This document shows, piece after piece, positions 5,930 through 53,936 of a DNA stretch of 64,000 nt (within the stretch, counting starts at the first letter, position 1; each line of letters begins with the position of its first letter). The stretch comes from Octopus sinensis. Lineage: Eukaryota. The stretch spans positions 15,128,001 through 15,192,000 of the forward strand of contig NC_043006.1 in assembly GCF_006345805.1 (NCBI RefSeq). The letters run 5' to 3'. A program made the position numbers and the translations under genes. The notes beneath the pieces are model-generated. The model did not search any database, had not been told where the DNA came from, and was given only the letters and a program-made list of their open reading frames with translations.

Positions 5930-6684
5930 CACTAGTCGTTTTCTGTAAGGAAGTCGTAGATCATCTGCGATTTGCTCCTGATCTCGACAGCGGTGTTAAA
6001 ACGGTGACTTTTAAGCTGCATTTTCATTTTGGGGAAGAGATAGAAGTCCGCAGGTGTTAAATCTGGTGAATAGGGCGAGTGCAGAAGCGATACCATGTTG
6101 TTTTTGTAGAGAAACTCACGAGTGAAGATAGTTCGGTGAAGAACCCAATTCTTTGTGCTCCACAGATCCGGGAACTTTCGCCGAATGTCATCCCTCAAAC
6201 GCTTCAAAACATTGCAGTAGAACTCTCGATTGACTGTCTGGCCTTGGGGGACGAATTCTAGATGCATAATACCACATTTGCAGGGGCGACGCTTGTGGCA
6301 GATCTTCCAGATCACTCCTCGTCTTCCAGAGGGATTCTCCTAATTTTGAAGCGCCTTTGTCACTCCAAACATTACATATGATCCATTGCCTTGTCACCGT
6401 AAGCTTGCCGAAGCATGCTCAATGTCTCTGTAGCAGACTTATCAAGTTTAAAGCAAAATTTCACGTTGGCTCTTTGTTCCTGTCCATAACGAAAATCGCT
6501 GACCACAGCATACATGGGATCACAAAAACACAAATTTCGCAACTTGCGAAGTAAACACAATGATGCCACTCGGCACACTACCTCATGAAGGTCACTGCTA
6601 ATTGTCACTGCGCACACAACCGTGTGCTGCAATCTGTTGGCACGCTGCAGAACTAGTCAGGGGACTTTTTGATACCACATCGTA
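5930..6684 (-). mobile_element. Mariner transposon remnant, internally deleted
   Basis: ORF peptides EQRANVKFCFKLDKSATETLSMLRQAYGD, GIMHLEFVPQGQTVNREFY and HSPYSPDLTPADFYLF; TIR-like end ggactttttgataccacatcgta. Confidence 0.92.
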
Positions 6685-7165
6685 TCTTCCATTGATTCTT
6701 GAGAATATCTCCCTTTCTCATACAGAGCTGAAGTTAATTGCCATTTGGTAATTATGATATCGTCTGCAGACGGATATAATTTTATTAAATCACGAATTTA
6801 TGTTGTATGGCACTTGATATATCTGTATTTGTCCATGTTATTCATATACATGTCACTAGCCACTGTGCTACATCTCTTAGCTCAATGTTGTTTAAATTAT
6901 GCAAATTAACTAGGCCATAGATGTGTCATCTTTTTGAAGCAAATTGTTTTCGTATTTGAATAGTTCAAACAAATTATATATGAAAAGCGTTTATTCATCA
7001 GAACATGTTCCATCATATTCAACTGTCTGCTACCACCGTTCTGCCAGTAGCTCAATTCCACGCTTATATCATTTGATTAGCTTAGAGGCAAAAAATATCC
7101 TTGCACCCGCTTACAACCTGATCCATAACACTGAATCCCCGTTCGCACAGGAAATAAATCACGGC

Positions 7166-8096
7166 TTAGGAAAGGTGGTAACCTGATGATGCAAGATCTG
7201 GGCTGCGGGGAGGATGAGGCTGCACTTCTAGCCCTTCAAACTCCTCAAGTTTGTCCCTGTTTACATAGGTTGTCTGTGCTGGAGCATCGTCATGTAAGAG
7301 TGTACGTCTGCCATTGTCTAATGATAGCTGGAGGTCTTTTAAAGCATCACATATCAACAGCAGCTGTTGAGCATGAAAGTTAGCGTTCTCAGCATGACCA
7401 TCTGGGAAAGGTTCAAAGCGAAACACCTCTTTTGAAATTCCACCAAACACGCAACATGACTTTCTATTCAAACTGCTTTTTGTTTGACAATAGGTTCCGG
7501 AGCCATCCCCGCTTGCAATTCGACGCCAAAAACGGGGATGTTGAAGAATCACTGGCAGCTGTCTGTAAATATTCAATGGTCGTTGAGCCTGATCATCGGG
7601 TTTGTCTCGAAGAACTTCCCGACAACATTTGTTCTTCACAAGTCCGAGTTTATAGAGGTATCGATTGACGATGCTTTCTGAGAGGACCAGGTTCTTCAGA
7701 CACTGTACAAGTGTTTGTACTTGGCTCTTGCTCAGCCTTTTCAAGCAAGTCCTCATCTTTCACAGTAGAAGATACCCACCACCTTGGTTTGCCTTTGCGG
7801 CTGGGGTCAACTTCTTTGAAACATCTGAAATAGTTTTGTGACAGTTCCTTGACCTTCCACATCAGTCATTTCTTTTGCCGCTGCCCTTGCAGTCAGTTCT
7901 ATTTTTTTCTCCACAGGTAGCGTAAATTGCCTCCAATTGCATTTTTCACCTCTTATCATAGTAGTAAAATAAAGAATAAACAATTTAGCAACGATTGGAC
8001 TACAAAATATATCGAATTCATATAATAGCATGGAGATACAAGTTGCCAAAAATTCATCAGTGAAAATCCGGAAAAGACTTTTAACTCAACCTAGTA
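7166..8096 (-). mobile_element. Second mariner remnant from a different subfamily
   Basis: Peptides LLHDDAPA and PHPPRSPDLASSGYHL; TIR-like end ttttaactcaacctagta. Confidence 0.88.
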
Positions 8097-11440: not shown

Positions 11441-11761
11441 TAAGATTTAAAAAATGAGCGTTAAAACGTATACAAGGTTAAATGAATACAACTAGACTAT
11501 TATTACTGCATGACGTATAGAGGTAATTCTAAGTCTAATGAGTATCTGGTGATTAAGGTAGAATCTTAATATCATTACTTTTGTGGGAAACTCGCAGCCC
11601 CCGAGACTTTCTGAATGGTATGCCTAACGAAATATTACCTTCATTGATCTTTTCGTAGTGCTGTCCGCCTGACCGGGTTATGCGTTGTGTTCTTGAGCAA
11701 GACACTTTATTTCACGTTACTTCAGTTCATTCATCGGTAGAAATGAGAAAATGTAGAAAAA

Positions 11762-12180
11762 AGGCGGCGAGCTGGCAGAAACGTTAGCACAGCGGGCGAA
11801 ATGCTTAGCGGTATTTCGTCTGTCTTTACGTTCTGAGTTCAAATTCCGTCGAGGTCGATTTTGCCTTTCATCCTTTCGGGGTCAATAAATTAAGTACCAG
11901 TTACGCACTGGGGTCGATATGATCGGCTTAATCCGTGTGTCTGTCCTTGTTTGTCCCCTCTGTGTTTAGTCCCTTGTGGGTAGTAAAGAAATAGGTATTT
12001 CGTCTGTCTTAACGTTCTGACTTCAAATTCCGTCGAGGTCGACTTTGCCTTTCATCCTTTCGGGGTCGATTAAATAAGTACCAGTTACGCACTGGAGTCG
12101 ATATAATCGACTTAATCCGTTTGTCTGTCCTTGTTTGTCCCCTCTATGTTTAGCACCTTGTGGGTCGTAAAGAAATAAGA
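11762..12180 (+). mobile_element. SINE family C, dimeric copy
   Basis: aggcggcgagctggcagaaacg head; body restarts at gtatttcgtctg. Confidence 0.9.
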
Positions 12181-13072
12181 AATGCGTTGTGATGTCACTG
12201 GTGGCATAGAGAGGGGAGACTGGTATGCATGGGCAACTGCTGGTCTTCCATAAAGAACCTTGCCTGGACTTGTACCTCGGAGGGTAGCTTTCTAGGTGCA
12301 ATCCCATGGTCATTCAGCGGGGCCACAACTTTACCTGTTCGCCTGATGACAAGCCATGTCTCATGCAGCTCGCTTCTCGGAAAAGGTTGCTCATGCCTGG
12401 TTCAAATGCTGCTTTACTAATGAGAGATCAATTATAAGCCAGTGGCTCCAAACATTTTCGGGCTGCTAGCTCTCCCCACCACTCATCACCACAAATATAG
12501 ACCCCTTTCTGCGGCAAATTCAAAACAATTGTATTTCACAAATAACACTTAACCTGATTAACCCATTATTTTGAGTTTTTATTTTACATCTATCGCCCCC
12601 TTTCGACCAGCCCCTTATCCCGTCGTCGTGTTAACGATTCTGCTAGGTTGTTGCCTTAAAAAACAAACAATAATGTTTCTTTTTAATACAGGTAATAAGC
12701 CTAAAATTTTGGGCGGGTTTTAGCCGATTAGGTTGACCCCAATTTTTCACTGGTACTTTATTTTATTGACACCAGAAGGGATGGAAAAAACTGACCTCGG
12801 CGAAACTTGAACTCAGAATGAACCGGGAGAAATTCCACTTAGCATTTTGTCCGGCGTGGTTACAATTCTGCTAGTTCGTTGCTTCTTGTAATACCTATGT
12901 TCAAAGTTATCATCAGTAGATGGTATAAGTGGTCGCTGCCTTAAATCGAACCCGGACTGTTCAAAATAAAAATAAAGATTCTTTCAGCTTGACGCCTTAC
13001 TACTACTACTACTACTACTACTACTACAACTACTACTACTATCAGCCAATTTCAAAGACACACAAACACACG

Positions 13073-17389: not shown

Positions 17390-18230
17390 TCCTATATACT
17401 AACCATACCTCGCATGAGTAAAGAAGGGATGAAAGCATGCATGCCCGGTACACTGCAACCTTTGTGTTTTCGGTAGAATCTCTATTAGACCGAACTCGCT
17501 CCTCAAGATTCTTGAAACCTGAGATGCTTTTTGATGACAGTTGGTTATTTCCTCATCTAATAAGCAAACACAATTCAACACCCTTCCAAGATATCTAAAT
17601 TTGTCCACAGAAGGCAGCGAGCTGGCAGAAACGTTAGCACGTCGGACGAAATGCTTAGCGGTATTTCGTCTGCCGTTACGTTTCTGAGTTCAAATTCCGC
17701 CGAGGTCGACTTTATCTTTCATCCTTTCGGGGGTCGATAAATTAAGTACCAGTTACGCACTGGGGTCGATATAATCGACTTAATCCGTTTGTCTGTCCTT
17801 GTTTGTCCCCTCTGTGTGTAGCCCCTTGTGGGTAGTAAAGAAATAGGTATTTAAATTTGTCCACAGCATTCAATTTTGTATTTTGAATAAAAATCACAGG
17901 TTTATAGAACGGGTTGGAAGCTGATTGAAACATAACAGTTTTATTTAACCTTATAGTAAGTCAAAAAAGCCATACGGGATTCACCAAGTTTAAGCATTAG
18001 GCGCTGCATGTCTCTGATTGAATGGGTTACCACGTCACAGTCATCTGCATTCAGTACATTTCTTATAAGAAAGGTGAACGTCTTTGTTTTTGCTGAAAAC
18101 CTTTCCGAATTAAATAGTTTATCGGTGCTTCTGAAATAAGTATGTACACCTACCCTGCAATCTTGGAATGCATTCGCAAGCACAACCGAAGAATACAGAG
18201 AAAACAAAGTCAGAACATTATTTGGTGATG
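17390..18230 (-). pseudogene. RTE-clade LINE reverse transcriptase fragment interrupted by a SINE
   Basis: Peptides NADDCDVVTHSIRDMQRLM, TKLNAVDKFKYL and DKFRYLG..LDEEI..QKAS. Confidence 0.75.
17611..17851 (+). mobile_element. SINE family C monomer with 15 bp TSD
   Basis: TSD taaatttgtccacag at 17596-17610 and 17852-17866. Confidence 0.95.
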
Positions 18231-18252
18231 GTCAGGTCACACAAATATACAA

Positions 18253-20697: not shown

Positions 20698-21091
20698 TAT
20701 CTACCCACACCAGACAAAGTTGCTAGCTACAATAAGTGTGTTTTGGTAAACATCTACTTCCGGAGAAATCTAATATACACACGATTCGATTTAATTGCTT
20801 AAAGGTCAGAGCTACAGTAAATATATGAAGAAGCAAAGTTTCAATTTAACATTTAGTAATTTCCAATCTTAAAGTGGTAATTACATATTATGTATATATG
20901 TATGTGTGTGTGTGTGTGTGTGTTGTGTGTGTGTTGTGTGTGTGTATAACTGCGCACATTTGTATACATGTACACAACTATAGTCAAACACTCGAATATA
21001 TATTTACTCATTTGTTCTCCCCCCCCCCCTACTCACATAGCCATATATACATATATAAGCACACAAATATATATGTATATATATATATATC

Positions 21092-21182
<91 letters not shown>

Positions 21183-21190
21183 ATATATAT

Positions 21191-21210
21191 ATATTGCTTC
21201 AGCAATACAA

Positions 21211-21246
<36 letters not shown>

Positions 21247-21294
21247 GGCCCCTGCACAAGGATGACACGCAAATTCGTGAAGTGTTCCATATTT
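21191..21294 (+). pseudogene. U6: Full-length U6 snRNA retrocopy
   Basis: atattgcttcagcaatacaaatactaaaattggaacgatacagagaagattagcatggcccctgcacaaggatgacacgcaaattcgtgaagtgttccatattt matches canonical U6 with CpG-type changes; only (TA)n upstream. Confidence 0.95.
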
Positions 21295-21360
21295 ATAAAC
21301 AGCGGTGGTGCCCCAGCGTGGCCGCGGCCTTCGGGCTAAAACATTTTTAAGCATTTAAGG
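21295..21360 (+). mobile_element. Retroposon 3' tail fused to U6
   Basis: ggtggtgccccagcgtggccgcggccttcgggctaaaaca aligns with the SINE B tail ggcggtgctccagcatggccgcagtcaaatgactgaaaca. Confidence 0.7.
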
Positions 21361-21363
21361 AAT

Positions 21364-21443
<80 letters not shown>

Positions 21444-21677
21444 TATATAATATATATATATATCTATATATTATTATATATATATATATTTGAGTAATTG
21501 AATGAATTATCTTATTAAGGATAATTCAAAAGCTAACCGATACCTGGGTAGCAAATTCACATCAGAAAGAACACGGTTGAAGCTACGTCCCTGGGGCATA
21601 GACTACGTGTCTTCGTGCGGAAATTTGTATGTTTATTTTAAAATTATAAGTATATGAAAGAATGGAGTTGAACGATA

Positions 21678-21774
21678 TCCTTTATTCTCGACATATGTTT
21701 CGAAGGCTGCATATTCCTAATTCTGAGGGAATAAGGAGTACATAATGCAGATTTCTCGTCAGGAAAATCAAGGA
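21678..21774 (-). ncRNA. Type I hammerhead ribozyme, canonical core, GUC site
   Basis: Minus strand TCCTTGATTTTC-CTGACGA-GAA..CTGCAT..ATGCAG..TTC-GAAA-CATATG-TC-GAGAATAAAGGA: about 12 bp stem I, long stem II, palindromic stem III ACAUAUGU. Confidence 0.8.
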
Positions 21775-22574
21775 ACTTATGTCGACATCAAAATGCACAA
21801 AAAACTTTTAGCTGACCGCTCTCAAGGAGCCCATGACGATAATGAGTGTCTCTTTATAATGAGTGACGTCAGATTGGCTGAATGTAGAAGAATCTAGAAG
21901 TTTCTAAAGGTTCAAGAGTTCAAACGAAGTAGGAGGAGGGAAGCATAAGAATAGTAAGGTGAGAGAGTGCAGGTCAAAAGAATGGTGGGTTTAAATGATT
22001 TCTTTTGTGAATGAGTGCCTGTGTGTGTGACTGTATATAACTGTCTTAAAGTGTGTATGTGTGTGTCTGAATGCGTGATTGTGTTTGTAGATGGGTAGAT
22101 GTCAGAAAACTGACAGCTGTGAGGTGAAAGATCTGTGTCTGTGTGTTCGATTATGTTTACTGTAGAGAAAGGAAGTGAGAAAGAATGGGGCGAGGTGAGA
22201 GGCAACGCAAGAATGGATAGTAGTAATTGGGAATATAAGAAAATCTTTTTGACTATTGGGGTGAAATATAGGAAAAAGTTTTTTGGAAATCGAGGGGTTA
22301 TCTATATTAGTCACTATTTATATGAGTGAAAGGTGTGTCTTTTCCAGTGTAAACACCTGTAGGTAACCCCTCGATTTCCAAAAAAATTTTTCCTATATTT
22401 CACCCAATAGTCAAAAAGAGTTTGTTTGAACTCTTGAACATTTAGAAACTTCTAGATTCTTCTACATTCAGCCACTCTGACGTCACTCATTATAAAGAGA
22501 CACTCATTATCGTCATGGGCTCCTTGAGAGCGGTCAGCTAAAAGTTTTTTGTGCATTTTGATGTCGACATAAGT

Positions 22575-22671
22575 TCCTTGATTTTCCTGACGAGAAATCT
22601 GCATAATGTACTCCTTATTCCCTCGGAATTAGGAATATGCAGCCATCGAAACATATGTTGAGAATAAAGGA
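22575..22671 (+). ncRNA. Type I hammerhead, second copy with GUU site and one stem II mismatch
   Basis: tccttgattttcCTGACGAgaa...atcGAAAcatatgTTgagaataaagga. Confidence 0.7.
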
Positions 22672-22791
22672 TATTTGTTAACTAGTCGTTCAACTCCATT
22701 CTTTCATATACTTATATATATATATATATATATATTATATAATGAATATATACAAGCATATCTTCATATACATATGTTTATATATAATATA

Positions 22792-22924: not shown

Positions 22925-23130
22925 GTACAGGATGTCATAAAACGTAAACAACATGAAATACGAAATACGAAAACATGGAATACGAACTTTTTTCCGAACA
23001 ACGAAAGAAACAAATGGAAAACAAGGCAAGTAACATAAAGAACGACCCTTCATCAGGTGTCGGCTGTTTATCTACTCCTCATTTCGAACAATTACAAGAT
23101 GTGTCTTCGAGAAAACTGTTGCTCCCGCAA
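22925..23130 (-). mobile_element. Unclassified repeat related to 44905-44990, with a partial hammerhead core
   Basis: Shared tacaggac/atgtcaaaaaacg and aacataaagaa..cccttcatca blocks; minus strand gacacCTGATGAaggg lacks a downstream GAAA. Confidence 0.5.
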
Positions 23131-23149
23131 AGCAAAATAAAATTAGCGA

Positions 23150-23607
23150 AATTGTTGATTTGACTGGTGTGTTCTGGAGCTCATGTCAACGGATTTTGAG
23201 TGAAGAATTGCAAATGAAAAAAGTTGCAGCAAAATTTGTACCTCGTTTGCTCACGGAAGATTAAAAGCAGTCACGACTGAATGCGTGACCCTGCTTACCC
23301 TCCTTCCCTATTCCCCCGATCTTGCTCACTGTGACTTGGTTTTGTTCTCCCCGAATGAAAAAAAAGTTCTTAAAGGTAAACATTTTGCAGATGCGAAAGA
23401 GGTGGAGAAAAAAAGGCACGACGGAAACGTTAAAAGGCATCACTTCTCAAGAGTTCCAGCGCTGCCTCGAACAGTGGAAAACGCGTCTGGACCGATGCGT
23501 TGCTTCAAATGGAGATTACTTTGAAGGCGATAAAAGTGTAAACATGTTAAACTAAGTGGATAAAACAATATTGCAAAATTCTGGTTTCTTCTTATGTACC
23601 CCTCGTA
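23150..23607 (+). mobile_element. Internally deleted mariner remnant
   Basis: Peptides LQMKKVAAKFVPRLL, PYSPDLAHCD and EQWKTRLDRCVASNGDYFEGD; end tacccctcgta. Confidence 0.9.
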
Positions 23608-23881: not shown

Positions 23882-24115
23882 GGCGGCGAGCTGGCAGAAT
23901 CGTTAGCACGCCGTGCAAAATGCTTAGCGGTATTTCGTCTACCGCTACGTTCTGAGTTCAAATTCCGCCGAGGTCGACTTTTCCTTTCATCCTTTCGGGG
24001 GTCGATTAAATAAGTAGCAGTTACGCACTGGGGTCGATATAATCGACTTCATCCGTTTGTTTGTCCTTGTTTGTCTCCTCTGTGTTTAGCCCCTTGTGGG
24101 TAGTAAAGAAATAAA
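23882..24115 (+). mobile_element. SINE family C monomer, followed by decayed C-like copies to about 24500
   Basis: Family consensus head and tail. Confidence 0.9.
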
Positions 24116-24745
24116 AATTGTTAGAGACTTGGAAAATATTTTTTCTGGCTCTTTACGTTCTGATTTCAAATCCCACTGTGGTCAAATTTACCTTCCTTCA
24201 TTTCGGAGTCGATGAAATAAAGTACCAGCAAAGTAGTCGGGCCGATGATATCGACTTATTCCATCACCTCAAAATTGCTGGCTTTGTACCCCCAAAACTC
24301 AGAAACCATTACGTAGTCCACCTTTAATCGTTGAAGTATCGGAGAGACTGCTTTGCAGCCTGTTACTAAGGTTCTTTACTCTCTGAGTTTGAATTCAACT
24401 AAGATCAACTTAGCTCTTCATCCTTATGGGGGATGAATAAAATACCAGTCAAGTATTGGTGTCGATGTAATTGACTAATTTTTCTCTTTCATTTTCGGGT
24501 CTTATATCCATGTCTAGAAATAATTTCACGGGAATCCTTTTATGTTGGAAAGTTAGATACGGTATTTCTATATAGCATTTAATTTCGGCTTCATTGCTTG
24601 CTGGCATGTGGGGTCTTTCATCTTAAGTAGTATAATAGTTGTTGTTGTTCTTGTTGTTTAGTCACAGGCGAGCCAAACACAGCAGACCATCATCAAAGAC
24701 GTTTTAGCCTTGATCATCTTATTATTTTTTGGTATGTGGGCGCAT

Positions 24746-24900
24746 GAGTGGCTGTGTGGTAAGTAGCTCGCTTACCAACTACTTGGTTCCGGGTTCATTC
24801 TCACTGCGTGGCAACTTGGCCAAGTGTCTTCTACTATAGCCTCGGGCCAACCAAAGCCTTGGAAGTGAATTGGGTAGACGGAAACTGAAAAGAGGCCCGT
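24746..24900 (+). mobile_element. SINE family B 5' half
   Basis: gagtggctgtgtggtaagtagc...gacggaaactgaaaagaggcccgt, cut at the palindrome junction. Confidence 0.85.
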
Positions 24901-25063
24901 GGTTTTTAGAGTCAGGGATTTAACTGCTATTTCGGCATGGTGGTGTCTCTCAGACACCCTTATTTTTTGTTGTAAAAAATGATTACCTTTGTATGGTATT
25001 TTTCCCATGATGGCCACTTGATAATATCGATATTTAAATACCGATATTATCCTTATTTATAAA

Positions 25064-25119
<56 letters not shown>

Positions 25120-25289
25120 AATATTTATAAATAAGGATAATATCGATATTTAAATATCGATATTATCAAGTGGCCATCATGGGAAAAATACCATACAAAG
25201 GTAATCATTTTTTACAACAAAAAATAAGGGTGTCTGAGAGACACCACCATGCCGAAATAGCAGTTAAATCCCTGACTCTAAAAACCACG
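24898..25289. repeat. Palindrome with 172 bp arms around (TA)n; third direct copy at about 25608-25779
   Basis: One mismatch between the arms; each arm holds the 32 bp palindrome gataatatcgatatttaaatatcgatattatc or a one-base variant. Confidence 0.95.
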
Positions 25290-25823
25290 TTAAATGTTCA
25301 TATCGCACCATGAGATAAGACAGAGGGACAAAAAAGACTAGCAAGAAATATTATTGAATAATTCAAGTTCCAGGATTTCTAGCTTTGCTTTAAATAAGCT
25401 TTGCCGTCTTCGGTTGAATATATCAAAGTACATAAATACAGATATATATATATATATGCAGAACAAACGTTGTACTTACATATACGAACGTCCATACATA
25501 CATATATATGCACGTATGTACAAGGTCAGTTAAATTGCTCGCCAAACACCTCATAAGCACGATATGGTCAAAATAAACACCGCAGTGAATATAGTGACGA
25601 ATTATATAAATTTATAAATAAGGATAATATCGATATTTAAATATCGATATTATCAAGTGGCCAGCATGGGAAAAATACCATACAAAGGTAATAATTTTTT
25701 ACAACTAAACATAAGGGTGTCTGAGAGACACCACCATGCCGAAATAGCAGTCAAATCCCTGACTCTAAAAACCACGTTAAATGTTCGTATCGCACCATGA
25801 GAAACGTTTGTTCTGCATATATA

Positions 25824-27091
25824 CGAGGGACGTTCAATAAGTAATGCCTCTGACCCACTTGCAATTGTTTGATCTAGCTAAAATTTAGAATTATTTATAT
25901 CTCTATAGATGAAGTGGCAAATTACAGCTCTGAACCAATTCTGGTTTCTGATTTACAGGTGTTTGAACTGAGTCAAGTGTGAAATGGAGCCTGTTGAGTG
26001 TCGAGCAGTGATCTGGTTTTTGTATTTGAAAGGACGCACACCACGGGAGACTTTTGATGAAATGAAAGTAACTTATGGTGATGATGCCCCATCATATGAC
26101 CTTGTAAAACGCTGGCATCGTAAATTCAAACATGGTCGGAACTCAGTGGAAACAGCTCCCAGATCTGGTCGCCCCCCTTCTGCCATTGATGAGGCATCTG
26201 TCCGTCAAGTTGAGGCTCCCATTTTGGAAGATCGACGCATAACTATTCGCCAAATAGTCCATGAGGTCAAGATTAGTACCGGGTCTGTGGAAACTATCAT
26301 TCATGACCATTTGCATATGCAAAAGGTGTCTGCCAGAGGGATTCCCAGGTTGCTCACACCTTTCCAGAAGCAAGAACGCGTCGAGTGCTCGAGGATGAAT
26401 TTGGAGATATGCCAAGACGATGAGTCAAAATTTTTCAAAAGACTGATTACACAGGATGAAACCTAGGTCTATCACTATGATCCAGAGACCAAAGCCCAGT
26501 CAATGCAGTGTAAGCACCGTGACTCATCTTCTCCAAAGAAGGCAAGGGTGCAGCCCTCCGCTGGCAAGGTCATGCTCACAGTCTTCTGGGACCAGGACGG
26601 AGTAGTGATGACAGATTTCCTGGCAAAGGGTACCACAATTACAGGAGCCTATTATGCTTCACTTTTGAGGAAATTAAGAGAAGCTATCAAAATCAAGAGG
26701 CGGGGCAAGATCAGCAAAGGCATCCTCCTCCTGCAGGACAACGCTCCGGTCCACAACTCGCGTGTCGCCAGATCAGAAGCACAGGCGTGCGGCTATGAAC
26801 TCCTCCCCATCTTCCTACTCCTCTGACCTTGCACCCTCTGATTTTCATTTCTTCCCAGCCACGAAGTTGTTTTTGAAAGGAAAGCGTTTCCCAGATGATG
26901 CAGCCTTGATTTCTGAAGTTACGTCGTGTTTGGAGGACCAAGCTGGGGTCTTCTAAAAAATCGGTCTCCAGAGCTGCATCAAACCACTCTGGGTGGTTCC
27001 TATGTAGAAAAAGACTAATAACTGTGCCAAGTTTCGTTGCTCTACTGCCATGGGAAGTGGGTCGGGGGCGTTACTTATTGAACGCCCCTCG
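25824..27091 (+). mobile_element. Full-length mariner transposon (about 1.27 kb), disabled
   Basis: 37 bp TIRs cgagggacgttcaataagtaatgcctctgacccactt with 4 mismatches; TA on both sides. Confidence 0.96.
25984..27018 (+). pseudogene. Mariner DD34D-type transposase pseudogene
   Basis: HTH region, ITQDET*V (W to stop at 26464), LLQDNAPVH, frameshift near 26810-26820, SDLAPSDF, further stop near 26954. Confidence 0.93.
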
Positions 27092-31245: not shown

Positions 31246-31513
31246 TTCAACACACACATACACATCCGTTATAGGCTTTGAGAGATGAAGAGGAACTAAA
31301 CATACGAAGTGTTCTTCTCCACTAAAATATTTATGCTGTCTAGACACATTCATGCTACTGCTATAAGATATACAAAAACACATAACTAGTTTGAAAATAT
31401 ATCTGAGAAAACTCTACATTGAACGAGAACAAAACCAACGTTACACCAAATTACTTAAAAATGACGATCTCTGTGAATCAGGCGTGTGTCCTTGACTGAC
31501 TCTTAAAATGAAG

Positions 31514-31862
31514 GGCGGCGAGCTGGCAGAAACGTTAGCACGCCGGGCGAAATGCTTAGCCGTATTTCGTCTGCCGCTACGTTCTGAGTTCAAATTCCGC
31601 CGAGGTTGACTTTGCTTTTCATCCGTTTGTCTATCCTTCTTTGTCCTCTCTGTGTTTAGCCCCTTGTGGGTAGTAAAGAAATAGGTATGTCGTCTGCCTC
31701 TACGTTCTGAGTTCAAATTCCGCCGAATTTGCCTTTCATCCTTTTCGGGGTCGATAAATTAAGTACCAGCTGCGCACTGGGGTCGATGTAATCGACTTAA
31801 TCCCTTTATCTGTCCTTGTTTGTCCCCACTGTGTTTAGCCCCCTGTGGGCAATAAAGAAATA
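31514..31862 (+). mobile_element. SINE family C dimer with internal deletions
   Basis: Restart after gtagtaaagaaatagg; ends gggcaataaagaaataag. Confidence 0.9.
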
Positions 31863-33163
31863 AGTAACTGACTTACGTGTGGCAGCATTATCAACTCTAA
31901 AGTTAGACTATAAAGAGATGTTCGATTCTGTCTTTCGATACTACAATCTCTTACCTTTGACAAGCTTTTATCTGTTAAAACTGTTACCTTGAGAATATTG
32001 ACTCAGAAATTCCAGAAGGTTCATACAGCTGTCATTAAGAACTGAAGCAACTAGACACAGGCAACATTGGTTATCGACAGATATTAAACTAGGATGAGAT
32101 CTTGTTTTGCTGTTCGTGTTGGCAGCAAACAACCTGTCTGCTCTATTAGGGACGTACCAAGGCTACATGTTTGTATGTACAAGGGAGTGAAAAGTTAAAG
32201 TCAAGCACATACAGAACCGTCTTAGCAACATTATACAGCCTAGGACAACTCAGTGTACTAGGCCCTATATAATTTATTTCACTGATAACAAGTCACAGCA
32301 TACATAGATCAGAATCGGACCCCCAGATATATGGAGCCCTTGGGTAAATGCCCAGTCGTAAGACGGCACTGCTCACACCTCTTTTGTTGAGGACCTGGAA
32401 ATTCCAGTAAAAGCAGCAATCCCATACAAGCATAAATGATCTGTTATTATGTTATGGGAGAAGTCCTTCATTGGGAATTGTTTATGCTTTGCCAGAAATA
32501 ATACTTATTTGAACTGTGTAACTTCTTTACAAAACATATAAAAACGTTATCTTTGAAAGAATAAATTTATATAGAACTAACATGATTGTTTTTCAGCAAA
32601 TTGGCCTCTACCATATTGTGAGTTCTTATTTCTTTGACCTCGGCGTTATTCTTCCGACGAATCTCATTGCATAATGTGTTGGCTACAACATTATAACACA
32701 TCGGTAGATAATAATAACACGTGGCATTATTAGACAACTGCTAATGATTTGGGTGATGACTTCACAAAGTCTGCGTCAGTTATCACCTTTTTGTGTTTTT
32801 ATTGCGTCTCTGTCCCTTTTGTGCACCAGGAATTTGGTTGCTATATCCTGTTCCTGGTTTGCAAACGCTGCTTTCCACATCCACCCCGCTCTAACCTTAA
32901 TGCAAAGCTGAAGGACTTTTGAATTGTTGGACTCTCAGTATTGCAACACCTAAGCCGCTGAAACCGCCCATTGTTCTGACACCAGCCTCGTGCTTTAACG
33001 GGATTTAAATAAAAATCTTCCATCAACATTTCACGTTAAATCATATTACAAACACCAGATTAAGTTGTTTTACTAAATTCTTCATTAGATTGAAAATTGA
33101 GGTGGTATATTTCAACAAAAATATGGGGCAGTGTGTGTTTCATATCCCCCACATGTCTAATTG

Positions 33164-40419: not shown

Positions 40420-41240
40420 CACGCACTGAAACATAGACGCCAAAAGACACTATTACCACCATAAGTTCTCCAAGAAAAACACACTACATAATAGGCTAGT
40501 AGAAGACAAAAAAAATGAATTAAAACTTTGGTTTTGGCGCAGATCAGTTCAGACCGTTTGCAAGCATGATGCCGAGTGAACGCAGATCTGTTGTTAGCAA
40601 CAGCGTCAAAACAAGAGAAGCAGAGAGAAGAGAGCTTCATTTGATCCGATGTGTTCATCAAGGTCAGATGACGAGATGGGAAGAACATGTTGTTGAGAGG
40701 AAGATAAGTTGGGATGAGATGTGGAAGTGGACGACATCTCGGCTGAGTTTCCTGATTCGTTCATCTTATGATGTTTTGCCATCACCTACGAATCTAGTAA
40801 GATGGAACGTTTTAGAGAATGACATCTGCAAATGTGGAAAGGTCGGTACACTGAAACATATTCTTTCCAACTGTTCATTAGCATTGAACAGGTACACATG
40901 GAGGCACAACTTGATCCTTAAGGTTATCTTCAATGCTATAAAGAACCAAATTCATCTCAACAACACTGAGGAAAAATCGTTAAAAGTACCATCAAGAGAT
41001 TTCATTACCTTCGTGCGACCAGGTCAGCGGATCCGTTTCAAGAAGAAGATCAAGAAACTTTCTGAGAAAAATGAAAAGTGGAACGGTTATTGGAAGGAAA
41101 CTGCAGATTTACCTGGGTGCCAGGTTTTCTTTCCCATCCCAGTTTCGAAAAAACCAGATATTTTGATGTGGTGTGAAAGAAAGAAAGTTGTAAATATAGT
41201 CGAGCTAACGGTTCCTCATGATGATAATATGGATAAGCAG
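40420..41240 (+). pseudogene. RLE non-LTR retrotransposon fragment (Hero/NeSL-like)
   Basis: FLIRSSYDVLPSPTNL, CKCGKVGTLKHILSNC (CCHC), RYTWRHN, KPDILMW..VELTVP (PD-D/E motif). Confidence 0.88.
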
Positions 41241-41428
41241 GAGGATCAAGGCCTCATATCAGTGAGGGGGGGCCGGTGCGAATTGGTGCCGTCGAGAGGT
41301 AGGCCCCGAAACGGCGCGCATTCTCTCCTGATGACCCCATACACTTGCTAGCTTCCGGTATACGGAGCTTTTAACTGGTAGCACTTGCATGTGCAAGTTG
41401 TTTGCAAGACATATATATCTCATCCCAA

Positions 41429-41484
<56 letters not shown>

Positions 41485-41490
41485 GTATAT

Positions 41491-41590
<100 letters not shown>

Positions 41591-51216: not shown

Positions 51217-53612
51217 CTGGAATTGTATACGTGTCTAAAACGTCGACCAGAAATGTCTAAATGTCTAAATATTGAAATGATGATGATGATGATGATTGGC
51301 ACCAGTTTTCTTTTGCATGAAATTGCAAAGAAAAAAAAAAAAAAGAGAAGAACCTATTGGTCTGATATGACTGTGTATATCGCCAAAAACGATATTGGAA
51401 AAAAAATATATATAAACGAAAAGGAAAGATAGTTTCACAGTACGGAAAGAAAAACAAAACCAACGACAAAAGAACTGATTCTTTTGGCGAGGAATCTACA
51501 GACTCGTAATGTCTGCAAGCAGGTGAGGACGTGTTGTTAATAAGTTATCAAATAAAGAGAAAGAGAACGGGAAGGTTGTGAAAGAGTAAGAGAGCTAACA
51601 ATCAATGAATTTATCTATGGAATATAACAAAGCCGTAATCGATTGATTAACTTTGTGGAACTACCAGGGAATATTTCTTATCATTGTTTTGGTATAAAAT
51701 AAATAAGTTAGGCTTTAAATAAAAAAAAAAAACAATACATTCCATTTATTGAATGTACACAGACAATTTGAAAAGATATATTTATATAAGTACAAAAAAA
51801 AAAATGAGTTAAAAAGGGAAAGAAGAAAAAATGTCGCTATCAGGATAATTGCTGTCAATGCTTATATCTTACCTAATTTATTTACTGTTTATTTACAAAA
51901 AATAACTATCAAAATTAATTTTAACTAGTATATTTCTAATCATGTTTATAATTAAATACCTTTCACTATAAACGAGTTACCTTGAACTTATTTAAAAAGT
52001 TTCTAAGTGGAGATTAGATTTGTTTCTATTGCAAATGTTATTAATGAACAGTAAAAAAAGGCAAACTTAATGCTAAACAATTTCAGATTCTTAATTAATC
52101 AAAATTCTGCCTTTCTCTCTCTCTTTCTCTCTCTCTTCCTTTCTTTCTTTCCCTCTTGCTCTCATTCTTTCTCTCTCTCTACCCTCTCTCTTACACATTG
52201 ATACACGCACTCACATGGAGGTGAAATCACGTAAATAGCTTGAATAAAATTCGAAGCAAAGAGGAAACGAACAAACAAACCGGACAAGCGAAAGTACGTG
52301 AGTAAAAAGAATAGAAATATGAAACGAAAAAAAAAAAGCAACTAACGAAGAAGTATACACTATCGTCAGAAATTAATTAGCACCCTTGATTTGCTCTTCA
52401 CTCAAGGTATGTGCTGTCACCTAGTGGCCATATCTCGAACTATTGCTTTGTTGCGAGTTCACTGTTGCGCAGAACGATGACGTAACTTTGTTTGCAGAGC
52501 AGTTTGAGAGTCTACAGCCTTATGATGTTGACATAGCAGTGCAACAAATTGGAGTGCGGATGCAGACAAATCTTCCTTTGTTTAATAGATATAGGTAGCG
52601 CCTCGCAAGGACCGAAATCACACCATACTAAGTTTTCTCATCGCGTAAGACGTTTTGAACAGCTCATAGGTTAATTGATTTAACCTATTTAATGTAGAAA
52701 TTTGAGAAGTGCTAATTAATTTCTGACGCAAGTGTAGAGTAAAGCTTCATACGCCAAAGGAAGAAGCAGAAAAGAATCTGACGGTTCGGGTGATTACACT
52801 TTATCAAAGAAAAGAAACAGAATGGAAAAGATAATTAAGAGACTGGAGAAAAACAAAAATATGCGATACCCCAAAACGACGCCTATTCATATGCCAGGTC
52901 ATAGGTAGGATATATATATATACCAAATTGTTTGCATGTATACGTTATGATGTAGATATGTCTCTATATATTTATGTGTGTGTATGTATTGTAGGTATGT
53001 ATATGTATGTATATGCATGTATGTGTGTGTGCGTATACATATGCGTGTGTGTATGTATATATATATATATATATGCATGTATATATACGTATATATATAC
53101 ATACATGTATAAATGTGTATGCATTTGTGTGTATATTTTTATATATGTGAGCATCTATTTGCATACATATTTTGTATTTTTGTATATCTGTATGCGTATC
53201 CATATGTGTGTATAGTTGTATGTATATTTGTACTTATGATATAGATATACTTTTATGATATAGATATGATATAGATGTAATTTTATGGGTATTTTTCTAT
53301 GTGTTCGTTGCGCAAGCTATACGAAGTATCTAATCGTCGTTGGTTACTTTTTACACCGTTTATTCCTTTGGAATAAAACCAATGTTGTCTTCGAAAACTA
53401 TGTCGAAAGTAAAAGAATTTGAATAGCATCTGCGTTCAACTCCATTTATTTACTTATACTACACAAAATACTGCACCTTAACCCGGAGCTTCTACCTTTG
53501 AATAGGGTCGCTACATCCTTGTTACTTGCGTGAATTTTGCTACCCTGGTAACTGTTTATTGAATTTTCCATGTTAACGGTAAATAAAGGATAATTCATTC
53601 ATCCATTTATAT

Positions 53613-53936
<324 letters not shown>

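Follow-up and report, generated by a model that had tools for sequence, protein, structure and literature searches.

The U6 copy and its insertion site

The unit at positions 21191-21360 of the window (the whole 64 kb stretch of DNA that was analyzed) consists of a U6 snRNA copy followed by a LINE-type retroposon 3' tail of about 40-60 nt, which is referred to as the X tail in the following. The features of the locus are listed below.

21067..21194, no strand: left half of the (TA)n tract (TRF, period 2, 66 copies)
21191..21296, + strand: U6 snRNA retro-pseudogene, near full length (Rfam RF00026, 107.1 bits, plus sequence reading)
21297..21303, + strand: junction or filler AAACAGC (homology to covariance model R2 begins at 21304; gapped and ungapped alignments with SINE B differ here)
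21302..21325, + strand: tail hairpin 1, GCGGU-G-GUGC-CCCA-GCGU-G-GCCGC (fold, 19/22 identity, pair counts)
21326..21337, + strand: tail hairpin 2, GGCC-UUCG-GGCU, with a cUUCGg-type tetraloop (fold; identical hairpin in the Octopus vulgaris locus L004, (-) ~15351)
21338..21360, + strand: tail end, AAAAC and then an imperfect repeat with units of 8-10 nt (CATTTTTAAG, CATTTAAG, G) (the L004 copy is homologous as far as ATTTAA)
21364..21489, no strand: right half of the split (TA)n tract (TRF, period 2, 65.5 copies)

The U6 match (RF00026, + strand, 21191-21296) reached 107.1 bits, compared with a gathering score of 44, and covered model positions 1-105 of 105. U6 was the sole Rfam family in the 64 kb window, and a permissive Rfam scan of the locus returned, apart from U6, only chance matches driven by (TA)n. 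The catalytic core (GATACAGAGAAGATTAGC) is intact, including both the ACAGAGA box and the AGC triad. The match opens with 4 nt (ATAT) that form part of the (AT)n tract and mismatch the U6 consensus, and the copy may be short of about 4 nt at its 5' end, lost in the TA repeat. Apart from these nucleotides, the full-length U6 that an earlier note on this DNA had placed at 21191 was confirmed.

At its 3' end, the copy reads ATATTTAT followed by AAACAG, and a run of at least four T residues is absent. Three conserved CpG sites are now TpG or CpA (UUCGG>UUCAG, UGCGC>UGCAC and AGCGU>AGUGU). Animal U6 is not known to have an internal promoter. Upstream of the copy only (AT)n and microsatellite sequence was found, and the promoter was judged by this absence of non-repeat sequence; a scan for bacterial promoters and terminators has no bearing on a eukaryotic pol III gene. 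Animal U6 genes need upstream promoters (PMC4494074). Its CpG-type changes, the lack of a T4+ terminator after U6 and the (AT)n sequence upstream mark the copy as a decayed, promoterless retro-pseudogene and not a gene.

The U6-X unit is an insertion into a (TA)n tract, since it splits the tract into (AT)n at 21067-21194 and (TA)n at 21364-21489, whereas in a paralogous element at 53530-53722 (-) the (TA)n is unbroken and leads into the same sequence downstream. The setting is the one described earlier, a (TA)n surrounding without upstream promoter context. As both flanks consist of (TA)n, a target site duplication (TSD) around the unit is unreadable.

Just downstream of the tract lies a foldback/MITE-like element of about 1.07 kb, whose inverted arms of about 290 bp (21645-21928 and 22421-22716) share 93.6% identity, and a diverged copy of it at about 53300-53722 (-) is likewise preceded by (TA)n. 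The (TA)n microsatellite seems to travel with, or to be targeted by, this element. Broken mariner-type transposase fragments were found at 5935-7759 (-), 23034-23552 (+) and 25972-26953 (+), and an HTH_48 domain of the Mos1 type was confirmed at 25972-26463. A reverse transcriptase fragment at 17402-18231 (-), recognizable by the motifs ..NADDCDVV.. and ..VDKFRYLG.. and split where a SINE A has inserted, is what remains of an old LINE and has no relation to the X tail. A 275-aa open frame at 40524-41348 (+), in which a CxxC...H...C motif is followed by KPDIL...VELTVP, had no Pfam match, and (TA)n follows at 41430-41590; it resembles the C-terminal restriction-like endonuclease region of R2/R4/Dong-type LINEs and is a candidate for such a region.

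The X tail and its relatives

On the + strand, U6 ends at 21296 and tail homology begins at 21304, a gap of about 8 nt that comes close to the about 10 nt estimated in the earlier note. When the segment GGTGGTGCCCCAGCGTGGCCGC (21307-21328) is aligned without gaps to GGCGGTGCTCCAGCATGGCCGC of the SINE B tail, 19 of 22 positions are identical. The local score of 29 was equalled by none of 5000 shuffles (mean 12.7, sd 2.1), and the segment was the best-scoring tile in the window outside the SINE B copies. The covariance model R2 (alignment A4) was built from nine SINE-B-type tails only, the focal tail being left out to avoid circularity, and found 21304-21343 with 30.6 bits (E=1.8e-4, model positions 9-48), spanning both hairpins and AAAC. 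The homology to SINE B that the earlier note had described for the downstream segment is supported by both measures.

The window holds three tRNA-derived SINE families. The 3' end of SINE B reads ...GGCGGTGCTCCAGCATGGCCGC-AGTCAAATGACTG-AAAC-(AAGTAAAAGAG)n; the element clearly ends in a short tandem repeat, (GTAAAAGA)n, and its copies have TSDs of a few bases only. The focal tail and the SINE B tail fold alike, with a two-hairpin layout in which the sequence of hairpin 1 is conserved, while in hairpin 2 GGCC-UUCG-GGCU stands at the same position instead of CAGUC-AAAU-GACUG. In the X tail, a T5 run (21344-21348) lies ahead of the terminal repeat, which comprises only two imperfect units, CATTTTTAAG and CATTTAAG. 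Since the folding energy of the focal tail is ordinary for its composition (z = -0.23), support for the tail comes from homology and covariation and not from energy. A coding reading of the tail as an ORF2 C-terminus was rejected, as stop codons closely precede the shared GGAPAWP frame in SINE B.

For comparison, four loci of the Octopus vulgaris assembly GCA_951406725.2 (about 156-158 kb), which were reached via the C-terminal ORF of a LINE in the window and contain the same SINE B, were added, so that the total sample amounted to about 220-222 kb or ~0.01% of an octopus genome. The SINE B common to both places the window in Octopus or a near relative. With a second model (R1), in which the X tail was included, 57 related tails were gathered in about 220 kb, and two hairpins are common to them. 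About 94-94.8% of the cells are paired across these tails, compared with 20-44% when the partners are slid. Four pairs have changed on both sides, where 1.4 were expected, a number reached in 10 of 500 shuffles, and in hairpin 2 both-side changes were found in three of four pairs; pair 38-49 of alignment A2, for instance, is U-A in 48 tails and C-G in four. Many of the 57 tails are copies of a few masters and not independent lineages, and the covariation statistics are moderately strong. With this moderate strength, conserved stem-loops with covariation, as they characterize the 3' tail of a stringent (CR1/L2-type) retroposon, were observed; the CR1/L2 assignment of the X tail is made by behaviour only.

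Several versions of hairpin 2 occur at one and the same place in the tail: cAGUC-AAAU-GACUg in SINE B, GGCC-UUCG-GGCU in the X tail and CAGC-ACAUUA-GCUG in an isolated copy at L004 49073-49135 (-). The compensated hairpin pointed out in the earlier note, in which GGCC-UUCG-GGCU replaces CAGUC-AAAU-GACUG, was thus found again at the level of the family, pairing being kept via double changes across the 57 tails. An older, diverged SINE B relative at L002 16150-16530 (+), which ends in (ATAAAAG)n, has the hairpin 2 GGUC-UCGU-GACU, a third version that stands midway between those of SINE B and X. A SINE-derived satellite, made from the 3' part of SINE B (the tail plus ...AAACTTAGCGGTTCGG...), forms tandem arrays at L004 4806-5556 (-), 44681-45019 (-) and 51042-51662 (+), whose period is about 137-139 bp.

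The O. vulgaris locus L004 contains a second tail with the UUCG hairpin, GTGCCCCAGCATGGCCGCGGCCTTCGGGCTAGAACATTTTAAAGGATTTAA, at 15369-15319 (-). Over 51 nt this copy shares 92% identity with the focal X tail, hairpin 2 and the terminal part included, and its terminal repeat has diverged. No U6 adjoins this copy, which starts 9 nt after the end of a complete SINE B in the same orientation, and its 5' breakpoint differs from that of the focal unit. The homology of the two X tails spans hairpin 2, AAAC and the terminal repeat and ends where the flanks diverge. The retroposon part of the focal unit is therefore 3'-terminal, as indicated by the end shared with the L004 copy and by a layout that parallels the end of SINE B. 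Because an independent copy occurs at L004 without U6, the X tail is a mobile module, and the comparison of the two copies shows that it is the 3' end of a dispersed retroposon and not the flank of a U6 gene. The earlier suggestion that the segment might be the normal 3' flank of true U6 genes does not hold in view of this U6-free copy. U6 and other Rfam families were absent from the about 156-158 kb of O. vulgaris loci.

The second X tail is part of a composite at L004 (O. vulgaris OX597842.1) (-) 15783-15310, in which a complete SINE B, 9 nt (TACTTACAA) and the 5'-truncated X tail follow each other in the same orientation. The composite is flanked by a 13/16 match, ATATACATACATATAG / TTATACAAATATATAG. 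Since 1.3% of positions in the TA-rich sequence give a match that good, the flanks no more than hint that this composite may be a template-switch chimera, i.e. a case of tail swapping.

The sample also contains isolated tails of 50-60 nt without a SINE body, one of which, the copy at L004 49073-49135 (-), has a 10-bp TSD (TAAAAGATTT/TATAAGATTT). These isolated tails represent extreme 5' truncation of the LINE-like kind. The T run before the terminal repeat is T5 in the focal X tail and T4 in the L004 X tail, and none is present in the SINE B tail. As a pol III transcript would tend to stop at such a run, the X tail would fit a pol II LINE RNA better than a pol III SINE RNA, and the choice between a LINE and a SINE donor is inferred from only two X copies. 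In about 222 kb, a parent LINE or SINE ending in the X tail was not found, only two 5'-truncated X tails; likewise, no LINE with a SINE B tail or X tail was recovered in about 222 kb. The divergent tails at L003 14926 and L004 3425 were tried as LINE ends and rejected, since the sequence upstream of them is not LINE coding and one is part of a local repeat.

The one full-length LINE of the sample was found at L004 28436-33812 (+), with an ORF1 of 498 aa and an ORF2 of 1149 aa (Exo_endo_phos APE endonuclease, RVT_1 and zf-RVT), and a second, partial copy lies at 23972-26905. It terminates in ...TGTGCAGCCCTGTGTGGCTAATAAAGAAAC(ATCT)n, which can be aligned not to the X tail but to the end of SINE A (for example window 11760-12182 and 31511-31867), the most abundant SINE of the window, and judging from this alignment it is likely the partner LINE of SINE A.

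Larger collections were searched as well. Metagenome pattern scans, one for the U6 end and the tail at variable spacing and one for the 23-nt tail, gave 0 matches, as did scans of prokaryote genomes and viral contigs for the X tail and for that of SINE B, which is abundant, all in collections seemingly without octopus DNA. A full-text paper search for tail sequence strings also gave 0 matches. When the U6+tail open frame was compared with 5.8 billion predicted proteins, a weak test, only spurious U6-only ORFs of other organisms were obtained and none with the tail. No exact match was found in the protein collection for 17 window ORFs, among them both unit-spanning ORFs, and a SINE C-derived peptide had one match there, without contig.

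Origin of the U6-X unit

In the unit, U6 lies 5', and its 3' U-tract leads into retroposon sequence of the same orientation. It is quite probable that this is a single, dead chimeric retrocopy which arose via template switch or ligation by the enzyme of a stem-loop-recognising LINE. We infer three elements of this reading: the joining by template switching or ligation, a LINE rather than a SINE as donor, and a single event. A stringent-type LINE that behaves like CR1/L2 would supply a reverse transcriptase which recognises the two 3' hairpins and primes on the short terminal repeat. Target-primed reverse transcription would begin on the LINE's own RNA tail, the X tail, at a nick in the (TA)n tract; about 55-60 nt would be copied through both hairpins, and the enzyme would then switch template to the 3' U-tract of U6 snRNA. 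Alternatively, U6 RNA could have been ligated to a LINE RNA fragment beforehand and then copied (PMC6789731); the template switch is the more economical account, but the sequence does not distinguish it from reverse transcription of a ligated U6-X RNA. In either case, copying would run to, or nearly to, the U6 5' end, and the product, 5'-U6-filler-X tail-3', would be promoterless and have been decaying since its insertion. A U6 chimera made by a stem-loop-recognising LINE was also one of two options raised in the earlier note, and the dispersed tail, the two conserved hairpins, the 5'-truncated tails and the decayed U6 fit it.

The main competitor would be two events, in which a U6 retro-pseudogene and a 5'-truncated X element inserted separately in the same (TA)n, perhaps a preferred endonuclease target. 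The sample contains about one isolated tail per 50-110 kb. For such a tail to land by chance no more than 10 nt 3' of a given U6 and with the orientation of that U6, the odds are estimated at about 1e-4, so that adjacent independent insertions are unlikely; for the same orientation and a gap of at most 8 nt the estimate is likewise about 1e-4, and about 1% if (TA)n is favoured 100-fold. Short isolated tails are nevertheless known as ordinary insertions, and TA-rich flanks are present at other tails, since (TA)n follows L004 3425-3486 and TTATACAAATATATAG follows the L004 X copy. The tail also keeps more CpGs (5/5) than U6, which lost 3/6, a difference that speaks against a single chimera and would also fit a younger tail, but is not significant. 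No convincing repeat was found around X alone, which is not decisive because the TSDs of the tail family are very short. For a separate U6 insertion, however, a tail-less, poly(A)-less U6 RNA would have no obvious route, as bare U6 RNA offers no handle to a stringent LINE whereas fusion to the tail supplies one, and for L2 and RTE only chimeras were reported (PMC4476161). Two separate insertions are thus considered unlikely.

An amplified U6-headed SINE-like family, whose master U6-X unit would be transcribed and repeatedly mobilised through the X tail, was the other option of the earlier note and found no support, a second U6 being absent from both the 64 kb window and about 158 kb of O. vulgaris (about 222 kb together). 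The architecture, a small-RNA head on a LINE-type tail, is that of a SINE, and snRNA-headed SINEs exist, as shown by SINEU with its U1/U2 heads (PMC4494074). The sample of 222 kb moreover excludes only very high copy numbers, with 0 copies in 158 kb setting a 95% upper bound near 5e4 copies for an assumed genome of about 2.7 Gb. The T5 run after the hairpins could terminate a pol III transcript; it precedes, however, the terminal repeat on which CR1/L2-type enzymes prime, and such a transcript would presumably lack the repeat. The only other X tail adjoins something else and has a different 5' breakpoint, translated U6+tail was present in no protein-database ORF, and the upstream promoters used by animal U6 genes are not carried by a retrocopy (PMC4494074). 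A family of this kind is therefore judged improbable, somewhat more so than two insertions. A functional or variant U6 gene with its natural 3' flank is hardly credible at all: the intact ACAGAGA box and AGC triad and the high Rfam score would suit it, whereas a T4+ terminator is absent at the U6 end, conserved CpG sites are substituted, the 5' end has lost nucleotides to the TA repeat, the upstream side is nothing but (TA)n and microsatellite sequence without a recognisable proximal element, and the supposed flank is a mobile tail that occurs elsewhere without U6.

Returning to the single chimeric retrocopy, both X tails are short and lie directly 3' of a complete small-RNA-type unit, namely U6 for the window copy and an entire SINE B for the one in O. 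vulgaris L004. A wider and rather doubtful reading is that the octopus LINE that owns the X tail habitually jumps to pol III transcripts after copying a hairpin module of about 55 nt. If this were true, U6-X would be one of a population of fusions, some of them possibly transcribed and amplified, and could lead to a U6-headed SINE or reflect SINE tail-swapping in progress.

Comparison with known snRNA chimeras and retroposon tails

U6 chimeras with elements other than L1 were described in platypus (U6-L2 and U6-Mon-1) and in Anolis (U6-L2, U6-RTE and U6-AnolisSINE2) (Doucet et al. 2015, PMC4476161). They contain short LINE pieces and no poly(A), with TSDs of 1-9 bp in platypus, and the authors concluded that non-LTR elements generally switch template to U6 and that this holds for the stringent ones too (PMC4476161). 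The octopus unit matches these chimeras in every testable feature: U6 lies 5' in the same orientation, followed by a short 3'-terminal piece of a stem-loop-recognising retroposon without poly(A), and the vertebrate copies are likewise dead pseudogenes, ascribed to template switching and with very short TSDs. It differs from them in its host, a cephalopod mollusc, in its (TA)n target, which hides the TSD, and in its near full-length U6, compared with a 5'-truncated U6 in most platypus chimeras. The background given in the earlier note, which named U6/L1 chimeras and snRNA-headed SINEs, was incomplete, as U6 chimeras with stringent non-L1 LINEs and SINEs had already been published (PMC4476161). 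The class of U6/stringent-LINE chimeras is therefore already known from vertebrates, and the octopus unit may be the first to be recorded from a mollusc.

Mammalian U6/L1 chimeric retrotranscripts (Buzdin 2002, as cited in PMC4494074) resemble the octopus unit in that a full-length U6 is fused via its 3' U-tract to a LINE 3' end and inserted as a unit, and a model of ligation by RtcB has been put forward for them (PMC6789731). In contrast to the relaxed, poly(A)-dependent mammalian L1, the octopus tail has hairpins and a short terminal repeat and no poly(A). The nearest amplified analogue is SINEU, the U1/U2 snRNA-headed SINEs of crocodilians (Kojima 2015, PMC4494074), in which an snRNA-derived head is likewise placed on a LINE-type tail. 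SINEU was amplified with a fixed head-tail junction, whereas a single copy was found in about 222 kb of octopus DNA, and its head is U6 and not U1 or U2.

The locus represents no new kind of element and no new function but a decaying pseudogene. It brings to light a tail family whose hairpin 2 changes in sequence and keeps its pairing, and which is useful to define what the partner LINE recognises. CR1/L2-type 3' tails are common to mollusc SINEs and LINEs and show compensatory stem changes (Nishihara et al. 2016, PMC4824008). The octopus tails are alike in having stem-loops near the 3' end, compensatory substitutions between lineages and, clearly in SINE B, a short-repeat end, and the pattern in hairpin 2 matches that of the CR1/L2-type tails of Nishihara et al. 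(PMC4824008). Taken together, the octopus chimera extends U6/stringent-LINE chimeras from vertebrates (platypus and lizard) to a cephalopod and supports the idea that switching to a U6 template is a property common to non-LTR reverse transcriptases.
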